Part shown: positions 7,070-37,100 of the stretch, one piece after another
Numbering within the stretch: the stretch's first letter is position 1
How the letters are laid out: each line of letters starts with the position of its first letter
Source of the DNA: Oikopleura dioica
Taxonomy: Eukaryota; Animalia; Chordata
Assembly: GCA_907165135.1 (NCBI GenBank)
Contig: OU015566.1
Span: 1,302,001-1,366,000 of the forward strand
Direction: 5' to 3'
Length of the DNA stretch: 64,000 nucleotides
Notes under the pieces: model-generated
Database searches by the model: none
What the model saw: the letters and a program-made list of their open reading frames with translations, nothing else
Told to the model about the DNA's origin: nothing
Position numbers and translations under genes: made by a program

Positions 7070-8980
7070 TCAATAGCAAATTTCATGCAGGTACGATTGA
7101 TTCATGTACAGCTCAGGGTGGTTTAGATTACTTCGCGCTTTTACAATATTTTCAAGACTAAGCACATCTGCTTCCGAAGCACTGTTGACATAGCGCATGC
7201 ATTCTTCCGGGCTATATCCGAGTCCTGCCAAATCTTGAAAGAATAACCAATAAACCAATTTTTCCTTATCTCCTTACCCATGAAATAAATCATATAAATC
7301 TTCTTGGCAACGTCTTTCGGGACATTTCTCCAGTACCAGCTTGGATGATGCTTGGCCATTGGACTGTTTGCGTATTGTTGCCGAAGAACTGGTTTGATGT
7401 CTGCGATCTTTTCCCAAGCATAGTCATATTCTAGATCCACATCTTCAAGGTGCAGAATCAAGTCGTATTCGAAATGGCACGGGCTGCATTCCCAGTGAAC
7501 TCTAGAATTCTCCGTAGAATTAATAATGACTCAATTAAACTTACGTTCTCCAATGCCTGTTATTCACAAATTCACTTGGATTCGCCGCCCTGGAGCTCGC
7601 GAAAGCCTCGAAAGAGCACGAAAACTGCTCGGGCTTTTCATAAGGCCCTTCAAAGACCCGGATGGACGGAAGAAAATAGCCCTGTCGTCTGAAAAAATGA
7701 ATTAGGAACGATTTCCGCCGTCTGTATTTTGTTTCTAAGTTGACGCAAGTTTTTTGAAAAACGAGCCTTTTGCACAAGTGCCCCGGGTTAACTCCTAAGC
7801 CGAAGAAAAAACAGCTTGGTTTTGGATGTCTTGTGAACTAAATTTTGAACTGTGCTCTCATAAAACTATTTTCAGTTAAATTTGAAAAAAAAATGTCTTA
7901 CCGTGGATTATGTTTGACATGAAATTTGTCTCTCCATGCAGAAACCAGTCTTTGAAACGGATTTCTTGTGTTCAAAACTTTCAATTTTGAAATTTTCTTT
8001 GCGAAGCTATTGTCCGCATAATCATCCGGATGCAATCTTGGGATCTGAGCTCTTCCATGCTTTCCGGTCAAACTTGCGAGGGCATTTTGCCAATTGGTCG
8101 TTCCGCATTTTGGAGGAAGACAAATCGTCAGGTTCAAATTTGGTTCGTGGAAAATATCCGTGTGGCTTTGCCGGCGACCCTTGATGAAGCGAGCTTGGTT
8201 CTTCTTTTTTGAAAAGCTTGGGGGATTGCATTGAAGTGGCGTCTCGTCATCTTTCGGGAGAGCTGAATGTATGAAGGGATGAAAATAGGCTTGAGAAAGA
8301 ACCTTTATTGAGATCATATATCTGCTCATGTAATTTAAGCAATCCATCAAAGTCGTCTGCATCAATTAGGTTTTGAATTTTTCGGCGCATTTGACAGGTT
8401 CGACGAAGGTACTTGACGCGATTCTTCATTTTTTCGTCTAATTTTCTCCATGCTAAGAATCAAAATAGCGAATTCATAAGGAGAAAATGCCGTACCTTCA
8501 TCATGATCAATTTTTGTCCCAGTGAGCTCGATTCCCTCCATAAAATCAGTCGAATTGCCATTTTCATAATCATCTACATCATCATCGTCTTCGTAAATGT
8601 AATCGTCAATTATCTTTTGCTCAATTTGCTTTTTCTCATATTCTTTGTAATAACCAAGACTTTCCTCTGTTTTTGAAAGCTGTTCAGCGATGAACTCCAA
8701 ATCATACTCTTTTGCAACAAAAAAACCTTTATTCGGTTGATTCAAAGAATAAACTCATGCTTGTTTTCAGCAATTTCTTTCAATTTTTCGGTATTCTCCT
8801 CCAAAAATCAACCTTTTTCCTAAAAATCCAACAAGAATCAGTCCATAAATGCCCTTAACGGTGCTCAAAATCTCCATAAAACTTTCTCTATCTTCTTATT
8901 TCTTGAAATTATTAAAGCCAATCTTCAAGTCTCTACGAAATTGAGAAGGAACCGGCGATAAGGGTGTCCCATCTGGGATG
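7070..8980 (-). CDS. Carbohydrate sulfotransferase (Sulfotransfer_2, CHST8-14/HNK-1ST-like); start approximate
   Basis: 5'-PSB motif CLPPKCGTTNWQ, 3'-PB motif TRNPFQRLVSAWRDKF, and spliced C-terminal IYFM-DLAGLGY. Confidence 0.85.
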
Positions 8981-9318: not shown

Positions 9319-12300
9319 TTAAAGCTCGAAGACAGGCTTCTCGCAAATAAGTGATTTATCATCAATGAGTGCTTTTTCACCATCGGCACATGGATTAGGA
9401 CAAGTTTCAATGAAATCGAATGATGTTTCTGAAATTGTTACATCGTTGCAAGTTTTGTCTCCAGTATCCGAATGTTGATTTAATCGACACGTGCAGAAAT
9501 GATCAGAGCTAGAATAAAAGTTATTATGCTTTCTTAGCATTAGTCATACCCAAAGAAATCTCCAATATCGAAACAGCATTGTGGATATTCTGATTGTCCT
9601 GGCAAACATTCCGAGTGATGGACTGTGTTACATTTTGTATTTTTATCATGAGAAGAATTATCTTTGCCATGGCAAAAGCATGGATCGTCAACGTGATATA
9701 CATACTCTGAGTTACAGCAATCTTTATTGATGATTCCTCTGACAGAGTTGCACTTCGCTCTCTTCGGAACACTTGTTCTCTTCCCGGTCTGATGATAAAT
9801 ATACTGTCCAAGACTGAATTCAGATTTATCGGAATCGTGTTTTGCAGAGATCAGCTCTGAAGCAAGTTGGAAACAGTCGCTGTCGACAGATGCATGAATG
9901 GCGTCATCGGAACCGAAGTCAAATTTGAGAGCCCCGCAGCATGATGGAAAACAATCTTTTGAAATATTACATTCATTTGTCACGTCTCTGCAGGCGAGAC
10001 TGTCAGTACTGCCCTCGCATGGATCGTATCTTATCCTTGAATAAAAATTAAGATTTGATGAAAATCATTTTGAAAACTTACCATTGGTCGCATAAAGTGT
10101 CTTCCTTAAAAGTAAGGGAGAAAGTTTCTTTCGCTTTAAGACAGCATTCTCGTTTTTCATGAATACTTCCGCTATTGTAACAATGGCTATAGCCGCATGC
10201 AGAAGCATGATCGGCCTGTTCGTCCACGTCAACAGTTTTTGATTTACAATAAGAACAACCCTTATTTGTGCTCGTGTCACAGCATCCTCCGAAGAAATCG
10301 GCGTTATTGTTGCATTTTGAAAATTTTTGACAAGCAACTGGAGCAGGGGTCTGGATTCGCTTAGCGAATTCGCTCATGAGCGAAGCGAAGCGAAGCGAAG
10401 CGAATTCGCTTCGCTTCGCTTTCGCTTTTTCTAATTTCAATTCGCTTCGCTTCGCTTTCGCTTTTTACCAAAAATTTTCGCTCAAAATTCGCTCAAAAGA
10501 CTTCATTTCCTGAAATGATCAAGGAGAGATCTCCATCTGCTTTACTTCTTTCAAAGCAAAAATTACGCCGCTTACATCTACATCTCGTAGATAATTGTTA
10601 TTGATGATAATTACTTCCAGATTTTACAGCTGCAAAGTTTCATAAAAAGGCGGAATGATTTCCTTTACCATCAAACCAAAAAACAAACAACAAAAATGAC
10701 TTTTATTGTAAAATGCAAACATTGCAAATTTACTTGCAACCGAAACAGTCTTCATCGTCATCTTGTCGCTGACCACTTTATGGATAAAACAGTCAACGCT
10801 ATGAACCACGTAGAACTCGACTGGGAGGATTTCGAAATGGACATCTATTTCAAAGGTGTCCGAGAAAAAAACGGAGAGCTGCAAATTCGAACGTTCTGGG
10901 ACTGCGATAACAAAGACAAAGAAACCTTCCAGAAAACCTTCGAACCTTTCCAGAACTTCATTCTACACGAAAATATCTCCGACGCGATAGAAATTTCTAT
11001 GAAAAAATCAACTGAGAAAAAAGCTGCGATCAAGCTTTCGAATCTTCTTCAAAGCGTCAATTCAGCAAAAGCCGCCATCAAGGACGATCCTGAATGTCAA
11101 ATCTGCTGCAACGAAATCGACGAAAAAAACTTCGCTATCTTTATCACTCCAAATCTCACTGCCTGCCACACAAATATTGCTCACTTTGTCTGCAACTCTT
11201 GCCCATCAAATTTCACTTCTATCCCATCTTGTCCTTTTTGTCGAACAAATGGCAAGTTTGTAACTCTCCGAAAACCTCTCGAATAAAAGAATTATAATCT
11301 CAAAAAACTTTAATGATTTCTTCTTTTTAAAAAGGATTAATTCGATAAAATACTGGCTTCTGATTGGCTTAGGGACCAATTTTCTGGAATCGGCACTTAT
11401 TTAATTATTATTAATTACTTTTCAAGCGAAGTTTTTTTTAACTGTTTATTTTCATAAAATACTGGCTCCTGATTGGCTGGGAGTCAAATTTTCTAGAATC
11501 GGCTGAAGTTTAGTTATTATAAATAACTTTTCAAGCGAACTTTTTTTAACTGTCTATTTTCATAAAATACTGGTTCCTGATTGGCTTAGAGGCAAAATTC
11601 TAGCATTAGGTTTCAACTTGTTATTATGGATAACTTTTTGCGCAAAATTTTCCAAACTGTTTATTTTTATAAAATCCTGTCTTCTGATTGGCTGAGAGCC
11701 CAATTTTCCAGAGTCGGGTGAAAATAAGTTATTATAGATTATTTTTTGCGCAAAATTTTCGATAATGTTTATATTTATAAAATCCTGTCTTCTGATTGGC
11801 TGAGAGCCCAATTTTCCAGAGTCGGGTGAAAATAAGTTATTATAGATTATTTTTTGCGCAAAATTTTCGATAATGTTTATATTTATAAAATCCTGTCTTC
11901 TGATTGGCTGAGAGCCCAATTTTCCAGAGTCGGGTGAAAATAAGTTATTATAGATTATTTTTTGCGCAAAATTTTCGATAATGTTCATTTTTATAAAATA
12001 CTGGCTTCTGATTGGCTGAGAGCCCAATTTTCCAGAATCGGGTGAAAATAAGTTATTATAGATTATTTTTTGCGCAAAATTTTCGATAATATTTATTTTT
12101 ATAAAATACTGGCTTCTGATTGGCTGAGAGCCCAATTTTCCAGAATCGGGTGAAAATAAGTTATTATAGATAACTTTTTGCGCAAAATTTTCTATTATGT
12201 TTATTTTTATAAAATACTGGCTTCTGATTGGCTGAGAGCCCAATTTTCCAGAATCGGGTGAAAATAAGTTATAATAGATAACTTTTTGCGCAAAATTTTC

Positions 12301-15300
12301 TTTATTGTTTACTTCTATAAAATAATGGCTCCTGATTGGCTGAAAGCTCAATATTCTTCCATAGTTCTTGAATTGGATGAGAAATTTCCATTTTTTGCGC
12401 AGAGTTTGTTGCCATATTGATGCTCCCACTTATTTCGAGAATCTAAGAATTTCTTTCATGATTCATATTGCGCAACGCTGGTCCGGATTGCGCGCCGACT
12501 CATACTCGATAAGGATGAAAAGGGAAAACCACTCTTAGGCTTTGCGCAGCCTCAGATTGCCTTTTTCACTCATCTCAAAATGCTGAAAGGGGGGAAAATC
12601 AATTTTCCTCCAAGGAAAAAGCGGAGAGCTGAGCCAGAAGAGATTAGCTCCGACGAAGACAATGAGCAAAATCCGGATGAACCCGGAACTTCAGAGAAAA
12701 AAGACTCGGTAACATGGAAGAGTCTGGAAAATGAGTACGCTGTCCAAAAAGCTCGTAGAGATCTCGACAAAACGAAGTTCCATTTCGACGGGGGAATTGA
12801 AGGCAAATTCGTCAATGGCAAGTACACCGGCGATGTGCGATGCCTTGATCCACGGTGTAAAGCGAAAAAAAAGGAATTCATCTGCCAAGATACCAAATCG
12901 CGCCAACCAATTAACTTGAAGAAACATGCTAGTAAGCTAAGCTTCTATAAACACTTGCGCATTTTTATTCTAGTCACAGTTCATTGCGAAAACAACCATG
13001 TCATCCTGCAGAATCAAGCCCCAATTACAAGTTTCGCGAAACCAAGACAGGTTCAAATCAAAAAAGCGACAAGGAAAAGCTGACGGAGATGGAGGCGACC
13101 ATAATCTGCAAAGAACATCTTCCATTGACATTTTTCGCGAAGTAAGAGTTCTTTTTCTTCCTTGATTTCAAATTGCGCAATTAATAGGGAGTCCCTGAAG
13201 GCTTACAGGGCCCAACTTTTGAGTTCCGTCAATGTCGACCCGCAGTGTCTTGACCAGCTTCACTCCTCTAGCTATCACTACATCAAAGAGGACATGAAAA
13301 AGCAACAAGAGATTCTCCGAACTGTTTTGAAAAAGGAGTTGCCAACATTGCTTGAACAAGGTTTGTCGTTCACAAAATAATTTTGCGCAATCTTCTATTA
13401 GGTTTCTGCGCATTACAAGCCGACCATAAATACATCAAGTCGCGGACACATGAGGATAAGAAGAACGGTATGGCAGTTCTTGTCACCGTGAGCTGCGAAG
13501 AAATCTTCTCATCATTGATTCTGGACTTCCGCGCAACTGATTCGACATCCTATGAGTCCACAAAGAACGATTTCGAAGAAATATTAGACGTAAGTTTCTG
13601 AGCAAATTCTGCGCAAAAGTTCTAGGAAAATTTGCGCAGAATATGCTGTTCAGTCTTGCGCAAAATTAAAACAAAAATTAAGGAATATGGCTTGTTGCCA
13701 TTATGGAGATCCAAGATGGTCGCCCTCGTTGGAGACTCAAAATTCGCCAAATTCGAAGACGACTCCGACTTCATGGTGGTCTGTCTCCTACATACCATCA
13801 ATCGCATCGTCGACTCCATGGAAGAGAAGGCGTACATCTTTGGCATCTACAAGGAACGATTCAAAGCTGTTGACAACTTCATTTCTGCGATCGCCAAGTT
13901 GCGCAAGCCTCTTGAAAGTTCCTCTGAAGATTGTCCACGAACTGTGAACGCGTACCTGAAGAAACTTTCGGAGCAAGGAGTTCCCGCGATCGACAAGAAA
14001 AAGATTCTGAAAGGACGAATGCGATATCCTGAGAAGAAGCTGACAGACGCTGAAATCAAGGAAGATTCATCGGTCAAAAAATTTCCGAAGTTTAGAGTAA
14101 GGCTGCGCATTTATTTATTAAATTCTCATCATCTTCTTTTAGGACCATTACCACAGCATCCGTTTTGGCGCAAAAGCTGAGAAATTCGCAACTCTTTCGG
14201 CAAACATGCGCCAAATTGTTAGCTTGAAGCTGAATCCACCGCTTGGATATTCTCACCTTCTTCATCAAGTCTCGCTCCCAGAAATTCAATTCATCGAAGC
14301 AAATCATTTTTTGCTCAAAGAAATGATGTTTGTGCTCCGGCAAACTGAGAGGAATGATTCGAAGGTATTATTTTTGCGCAGATCTTTCAAAACTAACAAT
14401 TCAAATAGGTTGTGCAGAGTCTGGTGATATACGAAAAGCTGATTATCTTCCTTGTTGGCGCAAAAATGCTGCTCTCGATCACGGTCAAGAACGCGCAGAA
14501 ATCGTCGACAAGTTGGCAAAGACAGCGCTCCAGAAGACTCTCCGTCTCATCTTCGGGAAGTCTTATCTACCAGCCCACAAGAAAATTTCTAAAGACGGAA
14601 AGGAAACCTTCGTGGAAGCTGAAATAAAGACGCTTCATCAAGCTGAGCCTCCGCGGATTTCGAAGCCTCAGATCACGTCGCTCTTCCTCTACTGGCCAAA
14701 CCGAAGAGTTGACCTCTACCGAGCCTGTGAAGCGATTAAAACAAGAGACAACGAAGACTTTTTCTACCAAAACAAGTTGATTCTGGAGGAAGCCGTCACC
14801 GACTGGCAAATAATCGCGAGAAACGAGATCCATCAACTTGCGCAAAAATTGCAATTGGGAGAAGAGCCGGCGACGGCAAGCCAAGTGACAAGAGCGGTAG
14901 CCAATCTAGATGTCTACGATCCACGAGATGCAGTTGCGCAAACTGAACCAGCAAGGCGATCAGAGATGTCTCTTTGGGAGAAAGTTGAGAAAGAAATCAA
15001 CGAGTACTTCAACGATGGTGATCACTGGCGAGCTTGGCTGTCTGCGCAAAATGTCGACTCTCCCAATTCAGAGTCGGTGTTGTTCGAATTGTTCTGGCGG
15101 GATCAGAAGTCAAAATGGCCAATCCTCTCAGCCATTGCGCAAAAGGTAGAGAAATTGTTTTTAAATTTAACAAATAAATAAGTATGCTAACATGCCCGTT
15201 ACGAGCGCGGAAATAGAACGAAACTTCTCCACCATGAGTTACGATTTGGAGAGTGGAAGATCAAGTCAGAAGGCTCAACACACCGGAATGGTAAATCAAC

Positions 15301-17219
15301 GAGCAAACGCAGGCCCATTCGAAGAAGCAATCAAGGAAATCAAGAAGAAGCAAAACAAAAACTAGTTTGCGCATAATTATCACACTGAAAAATTGAAAGA
15401 ATAAAAGATTTACGATAAAACGGCCGTTTCTTTTTGCGCAAAAATGTCTCTGTTGTTTGTTTGTTTTAAGATCACTTATTTTTAAACGAAAATTTCAATT
15501 TTATTCACTTTAAAAATTTCTTCAGAAATTTTCGCTTTTTTTCGCTTTTTTCGAAAAATTTTCGCTTCGCTTCGCTTTCGCTCACGAAATTTTGATTCGC
15601 TTCGCTTCGCTTTCGCTTTTTTTTAAAAAAAAAAATTCGCTTTCGCTTCGCTTTCGCTTTTGATTTTTGGCCGAAATCCAGACCCCTGACTGGAGTCATA
15701 TCAAGACTTTGCTCCTCTCCCCATTTATACCATTCATGAGATTGATAAAGTCCAATACAACAATCTAATATAATCGATGAATAAATAGAAAAACATTTAT
15801 AAAGTTTTTGATATTATAAAAGAGGATATTTTAAGAATTACCAAATGTTTCATCATCATTTCCAGCATTTTTGCATGTATCCTTGTAGTCGAATTTATCA
15901 TTTGAATCCTTACTGCACCAGCCTGTGGTTTGTGCTCCGCAATAATACTCTCTTTGATCATCATTGTCAAGATTAAGAGTATTCCGTTTGTAAGAGCAAT
16001 CTTTGTCCTTGTTAAATTGGCAGCTTGCATCAGAAGGATTATTGATACAGTGGCAATCATGCCATTTGCCATCAGTATAATCAGGTGTGAACTGATTGCA
16101 ACAAAGAGGGTAAGAATCTGATTCAGCATTGCATTCAATTTCTTCTTCTTTGTGCAAGCATTGTGTCCGACCAACAATTTTTTGAGTTGCTTCTTCATAT
16201 CTTGTGAATTCTTCTTCAACATGTGAATATCGGATTTTGCAAGTCAAGAGCCCATTAATTTCAGTAAAACCTTTAGCTGTCTCGAAACATCGCGCATTTG
16301 TTTCACTGAGAGCAAGTTCTCCATCGACGAATTTAGCTGTTTTGATCTTCATATTCAGAATATCTCCCCGTGAGGTTGTTGTATTATGCACAATCGAGAC
16401 AACATAATACGATCCATCAACCAAGTCTTCATCTTTCTCTTCAAATATAACTGGTTTGCCTATTATTCTATCCTCATAACTAGCGTACAAGCTCTCAGCA
16501 GTTGGCTTTTCATCGGTTCCGAAAAGATCTTCTGCTGCATAATTCTTCTCCAATTGAAGGTATGCCATAGGTTGTTCTCTCAGCTTAAAAAACAGGTTGA
16601 CTTCGTCGAAGCATTCATTCTGGACATATTTGAGACCCATGATACCAGTAGCACCAAAGAAAGCAGCAGCGATGGAGAGAACGATAGTTCCACCGAGGAA
16701 CATTCGGAAAGTGATTGATCGACCACGTCGTCGAGTTATGATATCCAAAACGAAAGCAATAACAAGACCACAAATGAAGATCAAAGCAACAGCAAAGAGG
16801 AATGTGTTCAAATAGACACCCGCCTTGAAAACGTTGAAAGTTCGTTCATCGGGTTCGTCTTCGCAGTAAGCAGCAAGAATGAGGGCACCTTAAATTCCGT
16901 TTTAAGATGGCCTTCAAAAATTTCAAAAAGCAACTGAAGAAAAGAAATCGAACTTACCAGCAATAAGAGTCAAAACACCCATGATGGAAATTCCACCGCT
17001 AGCTCCGTCGTCTCCGACATTTTCTTCATCTTCGTCTCCGCTTCCAACTTTCGCACCTCTAGCCCATCGGTTGATGAAGAAGCTCGTTAGTTTGAGACCA
17101 GCGATCGAGACCTGGATTGCAGCAAAAATCATAAAAAGCCACAAATCATCTTGAAAATTTGGCTGCAGACAAAAAATGTAAGCGTCCTGCCACGAAGTAA
17201 CTTCGCGGACAGAACTCAT
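9319..17219 (-). CDS. Multi-pass membrane protein with a long Cys-rich C-terminal region, interrupted inside an exon by the hAT element
   Basis: N-terminal TM helices (17219-16650) followed by Cys-rich exons. Removing 10344-15688 and one TSD copy joins ...EEQSLDMTP to VACQKFSKCNNNADFFGGCC in frame. Confidence 0.8.
10696..11286 (+). CDS. Intronless C2H2-finger plus RING-finger protein carried inside the hAT element
   Basis: CKHCKFTCNRNSLHRHLVADH at the N-terminus; CQIC...CHTNIAHFVCNSC...CPFCR at the C-terminus; 196 aa; AATAAA at the stop. Confidence 0.85.
   Translation: MTFIVKCKHCKFTCNRNSLHRHLVADHFMDKTVNAMNHVELDWEDFEMDIYFKGVREKNGELQIRTFWDCDNKDKETFQKTFEPFQNFILHENISDAIEISMKKSTEKKAAIKLSNLLQSVNSAKAAIKDDPECQICCNEIDEKNFAIFITPNLTACHTNIAHFVCNSCPSNFTSIPSCPFCRTNGKFVTLRKPLE
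11345..12400. repeat. Tandem array of about 10 x 108-bp units inside the hAT element
   Basis: CTGATTGG recurs at 11360, 11469, 11577, 11684, 11792, 11900, 12008, 12116, 12224 and 12332. Most units also contain TTGCGCAAAA. Confidence 0.95.
12580..15365 (+). CDS. Intron-containing hAT transposase
   Basis: BED-like finger (VRCLDPRC...NLKKHA-VH); putative catalytic D in LQADH and LVGDS; CxxH (CLLH); C-terminal KWPILSAIAQK-YANMPVTSAEIERNFS. Two frame breaks (~13050-13080, ~14350-14465) need very short or non-canonical introns, or are homopolymer frameshifts. Confidence 0.9.
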
Positions 17220-34180: not shown

Positions 34181-37100
34181 ATGAAGCTTTTAAAAATGTT
34201 CTTGTTCCTGGGTGCATCCCAGGGGCAAGATACAGCCTGCCCAGCCGGCTGGACGCCCGGAAAAGATAAATGCTTCAAAGTCATTCCAGGACGAGGCGTG
34301 AAACTGAGAGACGCTGGTATTGCTTGCAAAGGACTTGGCGGCGATTCTCGCCTGTTTACGCCATCTAGCCCGAAAGAAATTCAAGAAGTAAAGACTCTCG
34401 CGCAGAAGCAAAGCTTTGGTCTCAACTGGGCGCAGATGTACGTCTGGGTCGCCTACAAATTGGAAAATTCTAGCGCTCGGAAATTTCCTCCACAGCTTCA
34501 GTTTGGGCTCGGCAACCTGAATAGAAAACCTGAGTCAGGGTCTGAAAGAGCAAAAATGAAAAGCCGCGTAGCGGCTTTTTTTAGAAACGAAGCCGCAAAG
34601 CGGCTTCGCCAGAATTTAAATATAAGATTGAAAAATAATCTTGCGAAGCCGCCTTGCGGCTTCGTTTCTAAAAATGCCGCTACGCGGCTTTTCATTTTTG
34701 CTCTTTCAGACCCTGACTCAGGTTTTCCATTCAGGTTGCCGAGCCCAGGATTCAGTATTTTACCGGCTCGGATGCCCCCGAAGCTATGACTGATCCGGGC
34801 ATGGCCCGAGTCTGGATCCGAAAAACGAAGTCGCTGTTGAACGCTGGTCTTGTCGCGAAAAATGATATGAAGTTCATCCGAATGAACAAGGGGCAATTTC
34901 AGCTGACGAGTCCTTCGTTGAAGTCGTTTTTCGGAAAATCTCTTTGTGAAATTCCGAAACAAAAGATCGTCTGTGGCGATTCTAGATATTGCTATCAGCG
35001 GGAAAGTTTGCTCTGCGACGAGATTAAGTACGATGGAGAAATGGACACGACGGAGATGGGGTACAAATGCGCAGCGTGGAATGATGAAAGTGTTTGGCCA
35101 CATGCCTACAAGGAAAATGTGAGGGAAAAAGGGGAAGGTGTCTGGAACCGACAAAAAATTTCGACAAATTTTGGGTGGAAATTTTCAACCAATCAGAAGC
35201 TTGGACTTGGCAAACCGGCCAATCAGCAGCCGAGTAGCCGCCCACGCAAAATTTGTCGAAATCTTTTTGTCGGTTCCAGACACCATCCCGTAAAAAGGAT
35301 GAAGGAGATTGTTATCACTGATTTCAGGGGGCAACGCATAATTTCTGTCGAAATCCTACGAATGATGAAGATGGTCCTTGGTGCTACACTGATAGTCCTG
35401 ATGAGAAGGAACAGTTTTATTTGCTAGTAACTCTAACCCAAACCCTAACCCTAACCCTCCAACCAAGGCCTTAAGGGTGTCAACATCGATTTTCGCATTT
35501 TTAAGAGATACCCTTACTCAATCGATGTTGACACCCTTAACCATTGTTTCTACCTATCCCGAATTCCCCAGTCCCAAGCCCCCTTTTTGTTCCGAAATTA
35601 ACACTAAGAGAACTGTTAAAAGTGGGATAGATGCCCAGTTCCACAATGCAAAGAGCCCGAAAATGAGTTTCTCCGCGATCAAGCTGCTTGCGGAAAACGA
35701 CCATTGAAGCAAGACGCGGAAAGAATCATTGGAGGCCGAGATGCCAAATTGGGAGAAATCCCATACCAAGCTCGCTTGAGATACAAGCAGCAGCTCAACT
35801 TTGGAGGACAAAGGACAGATCATCAATGCGGTGCGACGATTATCTCGAGTTGTTGGGTTTTGACCGCGGCGCATTGCATTCCGACAGAGGATTGGTTCAC
35901 TGGAGGCAAAAATGTTGGTCAAGGTGGACAAGATTGGTTCAGAGTCGATGTTGGTTCGAGATTCTTCTACTCAGAGTAAGACAAACAATCGAAAGATAAC
36001 CCGCTGATTAGATATTTTAGCGCTAATCTGGATGTCATCACAGAGCACCCCGAAAAATTCGAAGATGCCAAGACCTTCCAAAGCTTCCGTGTCAAAGATG
36101 TCATCATGCATCAGGTCTTTATCCCCGTTTATTGTGGCAAATACTGACAAATCACAATTCTAGCGATACAAGCATCCAAACAACGATTTAACACTCATCC
36201 AACTTTTCCCGAGCAAAGAAGACGGTACTTGTATTGTCTTCGACGATCACACTCAGCCTGCCTGTATCAATACTGACAAGTATGAATCAATAACCTAGAG
36301 CAGAGTCACCTCACCCAAGATTCATCAATTTTCACCCCACCTCACCTCACCTAAAAATCGGCTTTCACCCAATTTCACCTTGGTTCACCTATCATTCACC
36401 AAAAATTTTTCACCTCACCTCAACTGAAATTTTCAAAAATTAGATTTCACCCAAAGTCACCTTTAGGGGAAATATGGTGAAAAGTTTTCACCTCACCTCA
36501 CCTCACCTAAAATTTTCGAAAATCGGCTCTCACCCAATTTCACCTTTGTTCACCTACCAATGTATTCACCTTAAATTTTTCATATCACCTTACCTCACCT
36601 GAAATTTTCAAAAATCGTTTTTGACCCAAATTCACCTTTAAGTGAAATTAGGTGAAAATTTTCACCTCACCTCACCTAATTTTTTTGAAAATCTGCTTTC
36701 ACCTTAGTTCACCCAAAGGTGAAGTTTGGGTGAATCTATTTTACCTCACCCTTAGGTGAAGCTGAAAGGGTGAATTTGGAACTCTGACCTAGAGTCATCC
36801 TTGTTTTCATCTTTTTTTTAAGCTTCCGATTCGGAGAAGGCGACAAATGCTCAATCTCTGGCTGGGGCGATACAAGCGTCGAAACAGAAGGAATTCAACT
36901 GGCCCACACGCTGCAGACAGCGAATGTCGACATAAAAGACTTCAAAAACTGCGCAAAATCGTACCGTGATGTGAAGCGATATCTCAAGCCAAAAATGCAC
37001 ATGTGCGCTAGCGCTCCTGGAGTCGACACTTGCCAGGTAAAATTGAAAAATGGACTTCTCTTGCAGAGAAAAAAGGATTTAAACAAACTTCAGTCCGACT

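Follow-up and report, generated by a model that had tools for sequence, protein, structure and literature searches.

The window analyzed here is a 64-kb stretch of chr1 of Oikopleura dioica (OKI2018_I69). Its minus strand carries g265, a larvacean-specific, Cys-rich membrane-protein gene of 742 codons, and a 5,345-bp element at 10344-15688 interrupts one of its coding exons. Upstream of the insertion, the large exon of the gene (15842-16888, minus) is 100% identical to the public model P0001, and a wild-plankton RNA contig, X6, covers its part 15842-16050. The 77-nt intron that follows (15765-15841, GT..AG on minus) is documented in RNA by the joint 15764->15842 of the same contig. The split exon has a 5' part at 15696-15764, which reads DCCIGLYQSHEWYKWGEEQSLDMTP with the adjacent TSD copy, and a 3' part at 10082-10336 (VACQKFSKCNN...CDQ), which X6 matches over 10081-10336 and which is absent from the public annotation. 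After a 46-nt intron (10036-10081, GTAAGT..CAAG), seen in RNA because the loose end of X6 at 10081 goes on with exon sequence starting at 10035, the remaining exons on the same strand (10035-9550 and 9508-9319, with a predicted intron at 9549-9509) lead to the end of the protein, ...LICEKPVFEL*. The minus-strand flanks of the insertion read ...SLDMTP|VACQKF..., with the insertion point after codon 432 of 742. Deleting the element and one TSD copy restores the 742-codon frame with one stop, and P0002 aligns with the product over all its 615 aa. The site is uninterrupted in all seven homologues (7/7), which conserve the spacing DMxP-x-x-C. The gene also has paralogues, e.g., g253.

The public model of g265 stops inside the element, ending ...DMTPVRV. 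It picks the donor GGG|GTCTGG in the terminal inverted repeat (TIR), and not the 15690/10351 pair discussed below, and finishes with a terminal 5-nt CDS piece (TG TGA, 15380-15384, minus) placed after an element-internal acceptor, TTTTTCAG, whose AG ends at 15385. This AUGUSTUS annotation was guided by RNA-seq of the same culture (PMC8008620). We flag this as a mistake in the public OKI2018_I69 record: the g265 model is cut short, and the 310 codons at the 3' end of the gene have no gene model.

The boundaries of the element are sharp. Its TIR, CAGGGGTCTGGATT, has two exact matches in the window, at 10344-10357 (+) and 15675-15688 (-), while two matches arose in 0 of 100 shuffles. The two TIRs are complementary at 14/14 positions (a perfect 14 bp) and open with YARNG, as for the hAT superfamily. 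They are bordered by a 7-bp direct repeat, ACTGGAG (TSD), at 10337-10343 and 15689-15695. The usual length of hAT TSDs is 8 bp. The repeat seen here is thus 1 bp short of it, and an 8-bp TSD would require the loss of 1 nt at one junction. The join of the empty-site contig contains exactly 7 ambiguous letters, matching the 7-bp TSD, and these letters of the left copy can be assigned to either of its sides. Two X1 DNA contigs whose flanks are different adjoin 10344, and this boundary is therefore that of a mobile unit. Altogether, the X1 DNA contigs cover both insertion junctions, further copies flanked by other sequence, and one derivative with an internal deletion, which joins 10488 to 15546. 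Hence, the earlier note was right to describe an exon of a Cys-rich gene split at ...DMTP|VACQKF by a 5.3-kb hAT-like element, as the TIRs, the TSD, and the restored 742-codon frame all attest.

Repeat searches and X1 DNA word depth revealed short GCGAA/TTCGC repeats next to the left TIR (10358-10482), and the sequence, repeat searches, and X1 contigs revealed TTCGC repeats next to the right one (15520-15674). The presence of subterminal repeats near both ends, together with deletion derivatives, is what is expected of a hAT element. By analogy with Ac, the left repeats are probably transposase-binding sites. The X1 word depth over 10358-10482 is ~80 times that of the flanks, and so these repeats must be common to many other elements. 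The repeat search also found a 108-bp tandem array at 11345-12356, with 9.4 copies and a TTGCGCAA palindrome in each unit. The TIR search identified no second copy of the element within the 64-kb window. A palindromic MITE at ~34.5 kb, with internal CAGGGTCTG, was discarded as a copy because its inverted repeat runs ~31 nt further out, and it is a different element. We also set aside 28 matches to the TIR in metagenome contigs as chance matches: all are single, none is paired or has subterminal repeats, and most lie in high-GC bacterial sequence.

The coding content supports the classification of the element as a transposase-encoding, hAT-like DNA transposon that is apparently autonomous. On the plus strand, it has an intronless 196-aa ORF (10696-11286), which the public record calls a gene (196 residues) and which has a weak RING-like Cys/His motif (Pfam zf-RING_5, E=0.022, below the cut-off). 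It is followed by the transposase gene (12580-15365, +), which has short GT-AG introns and an annotated product of 801 aa; a GT-AG path of 801 codons does exist. The C terminus of the transposase, ...WPILSAIAQK/YANMPVTSAEIERNFS, resembles a hAT dimerisation motif, with an intron inside it. A Pfam search with the separate ORF pieces gave no match at first, and later a sub-threshold match of the last exon to PF05699 (hAT dimerisation; positions 44-73, E=0.018, 15.3 bits vs a cut-off of 21.4). The precomputed PF05699 match of the public 801-aa product is graded "weak," the relatives P0006 and P0011 match the same family with E=0.005 and 0.0015, and the Atlas clusters nearest to the transposase are all hAT. 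Whole-library HMMER with a 284-aa exon of the transposase retrieved only 13 relatives, fragmentary and unnamed, and sequence searches of the PDB yielded either no match or spurious polyubiquitin rows in which no stretch passed. For the 284-aa piece, the AlphaFold2 model (pLDDT 67) had no Foldseek match in the PDB; against the AFDB clusters, the top match and 8 of 30 matches were proteins with hAT C-terminal domains, all weak (E>=0.05, TM<0.3).

How do transcripts behave at this site? The only one found across it is X6, a contig from a wild-plankton metatranscriptome that matches over 541 nt (256+76+209) with 0 mismatches. It joins 10336 to 15689, i.e., the exact empty site and not 15691/10350, skipping 5,352 nt, and both neighbouring g265 introns are spliced in it. 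As it combines spliced host introns with the empty site, X6 represents a mature mRNA of the empty allele. We considered whether the contig could instead reflect scarless removal of the element as a non-canonical intron. On the host strand, the join can be read in eight registers (CT..TG, TC..GC, CC..CT, CA..TC, AG..CC, GT..CA, TC..AG, and CA..GT), and none of the eight has GT, GC, GA, or GG..AG ends. Hence, the contig derives from an allele without the element, and the insertion is a young polymorphism. The empty-site allele that the earlier note proposed to look for is therefore present in wild plankton. The flanks of the filled and empty alleles are identical even though heterozygosity in this population is ~3.6% (PMC8008620), which also points to a young insertion.

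The remaining data bear on the site to various degrees. The junctions 15691|10350 and 15684|10337 were not seen in the sequencing runs examined, where the sole spanning transcript is that of the empty allele. The raw RNA runs X14 and X15, which carry the same species label, have zero depth on the g265 exons and on the element interior, and only partial matches, on the GCGAA repeats; they are hence uninformative on splicing. More than 15 RNA runs carrying the species label contained no g265 sequence words. A search of metagenome contigs for the site with a gap of 0-12 nt, wide enough for the empty, +6, and +12 forms, had 0 matches, and the 3' half of the split exon, used as a protein query, returned no candidates for filled or empty alleles. 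In X1 DNA, no empty-site contig was seen, and the depth of exact-match contigs from the element interior (64-102) is about the same as that of the flanks (87-120). Such depths would fit a viable adult male that is homozygous for the insertion. That state would call for either dispensability of g265, given its paralogues, or rescue by splicing.

Two pairs of splice sites at the ends of the element could in principle provide such a rescue. In the right TSD copy, which reads CTCCAGT on the host (minus) strand, the last GT gives the donor CCA|GTCAGG (first intron base 15690), with CAGG supplied by the right TIR. The left TIR holds the acceptor AATCCAG|ACC on the same strand (last intron base 10351). 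This first pair would delimit a 5,340-nt intron and yield M-T-P-T-P-A-P-V-A-C, with 12 additional nucleotides, in frame and stop-free; the donor, the acceptor, and the product are as the earlier note had described them. The second pair takes the TIR donor GGG|GTCTGG (15684|15683) and the TSD acceptor CTCCAG|TTG (10338|10337), for a 5,346-nt candidate intron and the product M-T-P-V-R-V-A-C, which adds 6 nt, also in frame and stop-free. Their splice sites were graded qualitatively, since the ab initio intron set of the window is too contaminated with false introns for a weight matrix. The first donor is weak: its +3 base is C, and the exon bases next to it deviate from the consensus. Its acceptor lacks a pyrimidine tract, has a branch-like CTAAG ~10 nt upstream, and is followed 12 nt downstream by another AG, which lies in a C-rich context. 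In the second pair, the donor GTCTGG is weak and the acceptor is preceded by a C-rich tract, CCCCTGCTCCAG. Between the two ends, nine AATAAA (the first of them at 15505) lie on the host strand of the element, along with a good acceptor at 15385.

Are these pairs more than chance? We placed the element in silico at each of 1,955 positions of the g265 CDS and looked for GT..AG pairs with both sites no more than 12 nt from the respective end. Of the simulated positions, 30.5% had one or more pairs that were in frame and stop-free, and 9.4% had two or more; the real site has two. With ~30% of CDS positions giving an in-frame pair, the real one is not beyond chance. Thus, the GT..AG pair announced in the earlier note exists and is in frame, at a frequency that chance would also give. 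Every copy of the element, in either orientation, has CCAG|ACCCCTG at the 3' end and GGG|GTCTGG at the 5' end, but this combination on its own would leave +19 nt and shift the frame. Each of the two in-frame pairs requires a GT or an AG from the g265 target site itself.

We propose that the element is a very recent, still polymorphic insertion and that g265 is most likely broken in the reference haplotype. An apparently autonomous hAT-superfamily transposon, with the RING-like ORF and the 108-bp array aboard, would have inserted by cut-and-paste after codon 432. The uninterrupted allele is the ancestral one; it still circulates in the sea and is the allele whose expression is seen. In carriers, a transcript started at the host promoter would enter the element and then either terminate inside it or be spliced wrongly, and the product would be a protein without its C-terminal 42%. 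The data show the insertion with its ends, the polymorphism and its ancestral state, and the truncation of the public model, and we infer that carriers do not remove the element efficiently in frame. Two observations count against a broken allele: the two in-frame GT..AG pairs at the ends of the element and the possible homozygosity of X1.

One alternative is that carriers remove the element as a GT-AG intron through the first pair, making a functional protein with an added TPAP, so that an autonomous hAT would act as an introner. Both sites exist and their product is in frame and stop-free; X1 is possibly homozygous for the insertion; intron-generating autonomous TIR elements have been reported (PMC12130899); and there are documented precedents for both the mechanism, in which the TSD provides one splice site of an introner and the element end the other (Huff 2016, cited in PMC13326754; PMC11282704), and the splicing of maize Ds1 from exons (cited in PMC3260210). 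But we consider this very unlikely. The junction is in no read or contig, such a pair is expected often by chance, and the contexts of donor and acceptor are poor, with a second AG 12 nt downstream. The intron would span 5.3 kb of host strand on which nine AATAAA and also a strong acceptor lie, and the RNA-guided model of the annotators did not use the pair. Furthermore, the four added residues would fall within a conserved Cys-spacing segment, leaving six residues between DMxP and the next Cys, vs exactly two in 7/7 homologues. The earlier suggestion that the element may persist as an intron is thus unsupported rather than refuted: the sole spanning transcript is that of the empty site, and the 15691/10350 junction was not seen in the data reached. 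What stands of it is a hAT-like element with a transposase in a coding exon, and not its being kept as an intron.

Rescue could also be partial, through the second pair or a mix of the second pair, the first pair, and aberrant isoforms, resulting in a leaky allele. This product adds only two residues, in frame and stop-free, with the same donor as the public AUGUSTUS model and an acceptor after the C-rich tract, and there is a classical precedent in the leaky, alternatively spliced Ds alleles (Wessler 1991, cited in PMC3260210). Still, it seems quite unlikely, since no read or contig has the junction, the metagenome search for gaps of 0-12 nt was empty, and X6 has the empty form only. The donor is weak and has a far closer good acceptor, at 15385, that leads straight to a stop. 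As for an assembly artefact, with the element misplaced in the g265 exon and carried there by no animal, the assembly does come from one highly heterozygous individual (PMC8008620), and the element, whose ends are very repetitive, is present in other copies. Yet a perfect 7-bp TSD flanks perfect TIRs exactly where the empty allele is continuous, and X1 short-read contigs cross both junctions (10080-10372; 15672-16050 plus 81 letters), even if X1 is possibly the same animal or culture. An artefact is therefore extremely unlikely. Finally, we regard as unlikely the broader claim that carriers splice a full-length transposase-encoding hAT in frame (+12 or +6 nt), keeping g265 functional, within a genome-wide wave of splicing-tolerated exonic hAT insertions in Okinawan O. 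dioica.

A broken allele makes the g265 insertion an ordinary, though clean, gene-breaking young transposon polymorphism. It is nevertheless a convenient test case, with filled and empty alleles that coexist with identical flanks, an apparently autonomous element, and two defined in-frame junctions. If carriers were to splice it, this would be an autonomous DNA transposon caught becoming a spliceosomal intron, i.e., an intron birth in a chordate. Alternatively, such insertions may be no more than recessive lesions that the very heterozygous O. dioica population carries.

The closest known system is maize Ac/Ds. The two elements are of the same size class (5.3 kb and 801 aa here vs 4.6 kb and 807 aa for Ac), and both have short TIRs opening with CAGGG (C/TAGGGATGAAA in Ac) and, in the outer ~150-200 bp at either end, clusters of short subterminal repeats. 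Derivatives with internal deletions occur for both, and both transposases have a hAT dimerisation motif at the C terminus (a weak match in the g265 element). They differ in the TSD (7 vs 8 bp), in the extra RING-like ORF and 108-bp array of the g265 element, and in its transposase, which is sub-threshold to Pfam piece by piece. Exonic Ds1 insertions can be spliced with element-borne sites (Dennis 1988, Wessler 1991, cited in PMC3260210). Introners of Micromonas and Aureococcus are transposons that create introns upon insertion (Huff 2016, cited in PMC13326754; surveys PMC9860276, PMC12130899). As in those, a DNA transposon with TIRs and TSD lies in a coding exon of a transcribed gene (X6 for g265), its potential splice sites are part TSD and part element end, and relatives are intronless at the position, the 7 homologues being continuous. 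In contrast, introners are defined by splicing and by many intron-forming copies, and most are short and non-autonomous (PMC12130899), whereas the g265 element is 5.3 kb and coding and its pair depends on a GT present by chance in this target site. Closer in phylogeny, Fritillaria borealis has thousands of fixed, spliced MITE-derived introns, mostly non-GT-AG, and a modified spliceosome (Henriet et al. 2019, summarised in PMC11282704 and PMC13326754). It belongs to the same animal class, has a compact genome, and is a case where transposon insertions are the proposed source of new introns; the g265 element differs from these in being one unfixed O. dioica insertion.

The gene g265, on the minus strand of Oikopleura dioica OKI2018_I69 chromosome 1 (OU015566.1, about 1.31-1.33 Mb), is split within an exon by a very young transposon insertion. 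The 5,345-bp element (10344-15688) carries at its ends a perfect 14-bp terminal inverted repeat (TIR), CAGGGGTCTGGATT, whose only two matches in the 64 kb are these ends (none of 100 shuffles gave two). A direct repeat, ACTGGAG, lies on either side (10337-10343 and 15689-15695), and over 541 nt the flanking sequence is identical to that of an empty allele still in circulation. The minus-strand flanks encode ...GEEQSLDMTP | VACQKFSKCNN..., and the host frame without the element and one copy of the repeat has 742 codons and a single stop, at its end. This frame is 48% identical to a 615-aa marine metatranscriptome protein (P0002) across the full length of the latter, and seven of seven homologues, including the same-chromosome paralogue g253, are uninterrupted at the site and keep the spacing D-M-x-P-x-x-C. 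The insertion is polymorphic and the uninterrupted state is ancestral. The family (P0002, P0019-P0024, and g253) comprises fast-evolving Cys-rich membrane proteins of 600-800 aa, with N-terminal hydrophobic segments and a long Cys-rich part, in which a Pfam search found no domain. No members turned up outside Oikopleura and marine metatranscriptome contigs (larvacean-like sequences), and chromosome 1 has at least two paralogues.

The empty allele is expressed. A wild marine-plankton metatranscriptome (X6) contains 70% of the sampled g265 words. When sequencing runs were compared with positions 10080-16050, one X6 contig (1,477 nt) covered 10081-10336, 15689-15764, and 15842-16050 with no mismatches and no gaps. 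Both neighboring host introns, one of 77 nt (15765-15841) and, via a loose end, one of 46 nt (10036-10081), are spliced in this contig, which therefore represents mature mRNA. At the insertion site it joins 10336 to 15689 with 7 ambiguous letters and skips 5,352 nt, i.e., the element plus one copy of the repeat, which is the exact empty site. Could this be a scarless splice product? None of the eight registers of the join on the host strand (CT..TG, TC..GC, CC..CT, CA..TC, AG..CC, GT..CA, TC..AG, and CA..GT) is GT-AG or G[ACG]-AG; hence, the contig comes from an allele that never held the element. Excision of hAT elements usually leaves footprints, and the footprint-free site argues likewise for a never-inserted allele. 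Two raw oligo-dT RNA-seq runs labeled O. dioica (X14 and X15, 1.5-1.8 Gb sampled from each) gave zero coverage of both the host exons and the interior of the element. Their matches near the site are partial and confined to GCGAA repeats, so that neither run probes splicing. In these animals, the element copy at g265 and the host gene are silent or absent.

The earlier note had proposed that the element is spliced out as a GT-AG intron. Its coordinates are correct: the donor CCA|GTCAGG places the first intron base at 15690 and the acceptor AATCCAG|ACC the last at 10351, giving a 5,340-nt intron, a gain of 12 nt, and the product M-T-P-T-P-A-P-V-A-C. A transcript with this junction would skip 5,340 nt; the spanning X6 contig, from an empty allele, skips 5,352 nt. 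There is also a second in-frame pair without stops, made of the TIR-internal donor GGG|GTCTGG (15684|15683) and an acceptor borne by the duplication, CTCCAG|TTG (10338|10337), which would add 6 nt (M-T-P-V-R-V-A-C). How often do such pairs occur by chance? We placed the element and a 7-bp duplication in silico at each of the 1,955 positions that the reconstructed coding sequence offers, scoring in-frame, stop-free GT..AG pairs at most 12 nt from both ends. At least one pair was offered by 30.5% of the positions, so the proposed pair is not beyond chance. At least two pairs were present at 9.4%, and a pair with a GTR donor, which is absent at the actual insertion site, at 6.3%. The pair present in every copy of the element (GT and AG both from the TIR) adds 19 nt and shifts the frame. 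The host strand of the element further contains nine AATAAA motifs, the first at 15505, and a good acceptor, TTTTTCAG, whose AG ends at 15385, about 300 nt past the donor.

The large exon at 15842-16888 (minus strand) is 100% identical to Oidioi.mRNA.OKI2018_I69.chr1.g265.t1, whose model continues through the duplication into the TIR, splices from the GGG|GTCTGG donor to the internal acceptor at 15385, and reaches a stop at 15380, finishing with a 5-nt exon inside the element. The corresponding protein (P0001) has 435 aa and ends in ...DMTPVRV. The annotation continues with the transposase, a RING-like open reading frame, and a sulfotransferase gene (7070-8877), and the 310 terminal codons of g265 (10336-9319, minus strand) have no public gene model. 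The truncation of g265 in the OKI2018_I69 record is an annotation error due to the insertion.

What is the fate of the filled allele? The insertion lies after codon 432 of g265 and read-through would end 61 codons further on; we consider it likely that the allele is truncated or hypomorphic and has not gained an intron. The main argument for rescue comes from a set of DNA contigs (X1) that span both junctions (10080-10372, and 15672-16050 plus 81 more letters). Among them, interior contigs that match exactly are about as deep as the flanks, and an empty-site join was not seen; therefore the adult male may have been homozygous, although his viability is equally explicable by paralogues. The assembly derives from one male with a heterozygosity of about 3.6% (PMC8008620), and X1 may be this animal or its culture, in which case its support for the junctions is not independent. 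The annotation was made with AUGUSTUS, guided by intron hints from RNA-seq of the same laboratory culture (PMC8008620), and frequent junction reads across the element would probably have entered the public g265 model. This argument is weak because g265 expression may be low; g265 words are absent from every RNA run labeled as this species (more than 15). Partial rescue, through the pair adding 6 nt or a mixture of forms, seems to us improbable, and removal of the element at the exact junction adding 12 nt more improbable still.

The element itself is complex. Short-repeat arrays of GCGAA/TTCGC adjoin both ends on the inside. An intronless 196-aa open reading frame (10696-11286, plus strand), recorded publicly as a gene, has a C-terminal Cys/His pattern and a weak RING-like motif, for which all matches are subthreshold (Pfam zf-RING_5, E=0.022); it may be a captured or an accessory transposon gene. 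Between it and the intron-containing transposase gene (12580-15365, plus strand; 801-aa product in the public annotation) lies a 108-bp tandem array (11345-12356; 9.4 copies, 88% matches), which forms a spurious 289-aa repeat frame on the minus strand. The window contains 17 copies of the palindrome TTGCGCAA, against about 2 expected and a maximum of 6 in 100 shuffles, and 16 of these copies are within the element (11638-15441): 7 in units of the 108-bp array and 9 across the transposase gene, its introns, and the 3' end. The palindrome may be bound by the transposase or by a host factor.

We class the element as hAT-like with reservation, because its duplication measures 7 bp and not the 8 bp that define hAT elements, and the lines of evidence, each one weak, converge. 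Its TIR opens with CAGGG, as does that of Ac (C/TAGGGATGAAA; PMC3260210). The transposase C terminus, ...WPILSAIAQK / YANMPVTSAEIERNFS, is split by a 37-nt intron, and the last exon alone matches positions 44-73 of Pfam Dimer_Tnp_hAT (E=0.018). Two relatives from a whole-library HMMER search (P0006 and P0011) match the same domain (E=0.005 and 0.0015), and the public 801-aa product has a weak precomputed PF05699 match. The closest ESM-Atlas clusters are all hAT, and a mid-confidence AlphaFold model searched against AFDB gave hAT C-terminal-domain proteins as the top match and as 8 of 30, with E>=0.05 and TM<0.3. PDB searches with the transposase returned nothing informative.

Other copies exist. 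Some X1 contigs reach 10344 from different flanks, a second and diverged copy of the interior is present among them, and in a deletion derivative 10488 is fused to 15546 through 39 filler letters, leaving a relative of about 300 bp, MITE-like and made up of ends only. Word depth in the subterminal regions is about 10-80 times that of the flanks, and therefore the subterminal repeats are common to many elements. Reads of X14 and X15 (2026) match partially at 10379-10420 and 15524-15576 and then continue into other sequence, so those animals transcribe related repeat-bearing elements from some site. Within a gene, a palindromic element (34506-34746) contains CAGGGTCTG...CAGACCCTG, TIR-like in appearance; we rejected it as a relative because its inverted repeat extends about 31 nt beyond on both sides (GGGCTCGGCAACCTGAAT...).

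Splicing of exonic hAT elements is classical, as for the Ds1 insertions of Adh1 and waxy (Dennis 1988; Wessler 1991; both as cited in PMC3260210), and introners that use the target-site duplication for one splice site are established (Huff 2016, as cited in PMC13326754; reviewed in PMC11282704 and PMC9860276). A 2025 survey found that both autonomous and nonautonomous TIR elements generate introns, the great majority being nonautonomous (PMC12130899). Hence, the proposed intron, if true, would be of an already documented sort. The present analysis contributes an mRNA transcribed from the empty allele, an estimate of how often such splice pairs arise by chance, a second pair that competes with the first, and the finding that the public g265 model is truncated.
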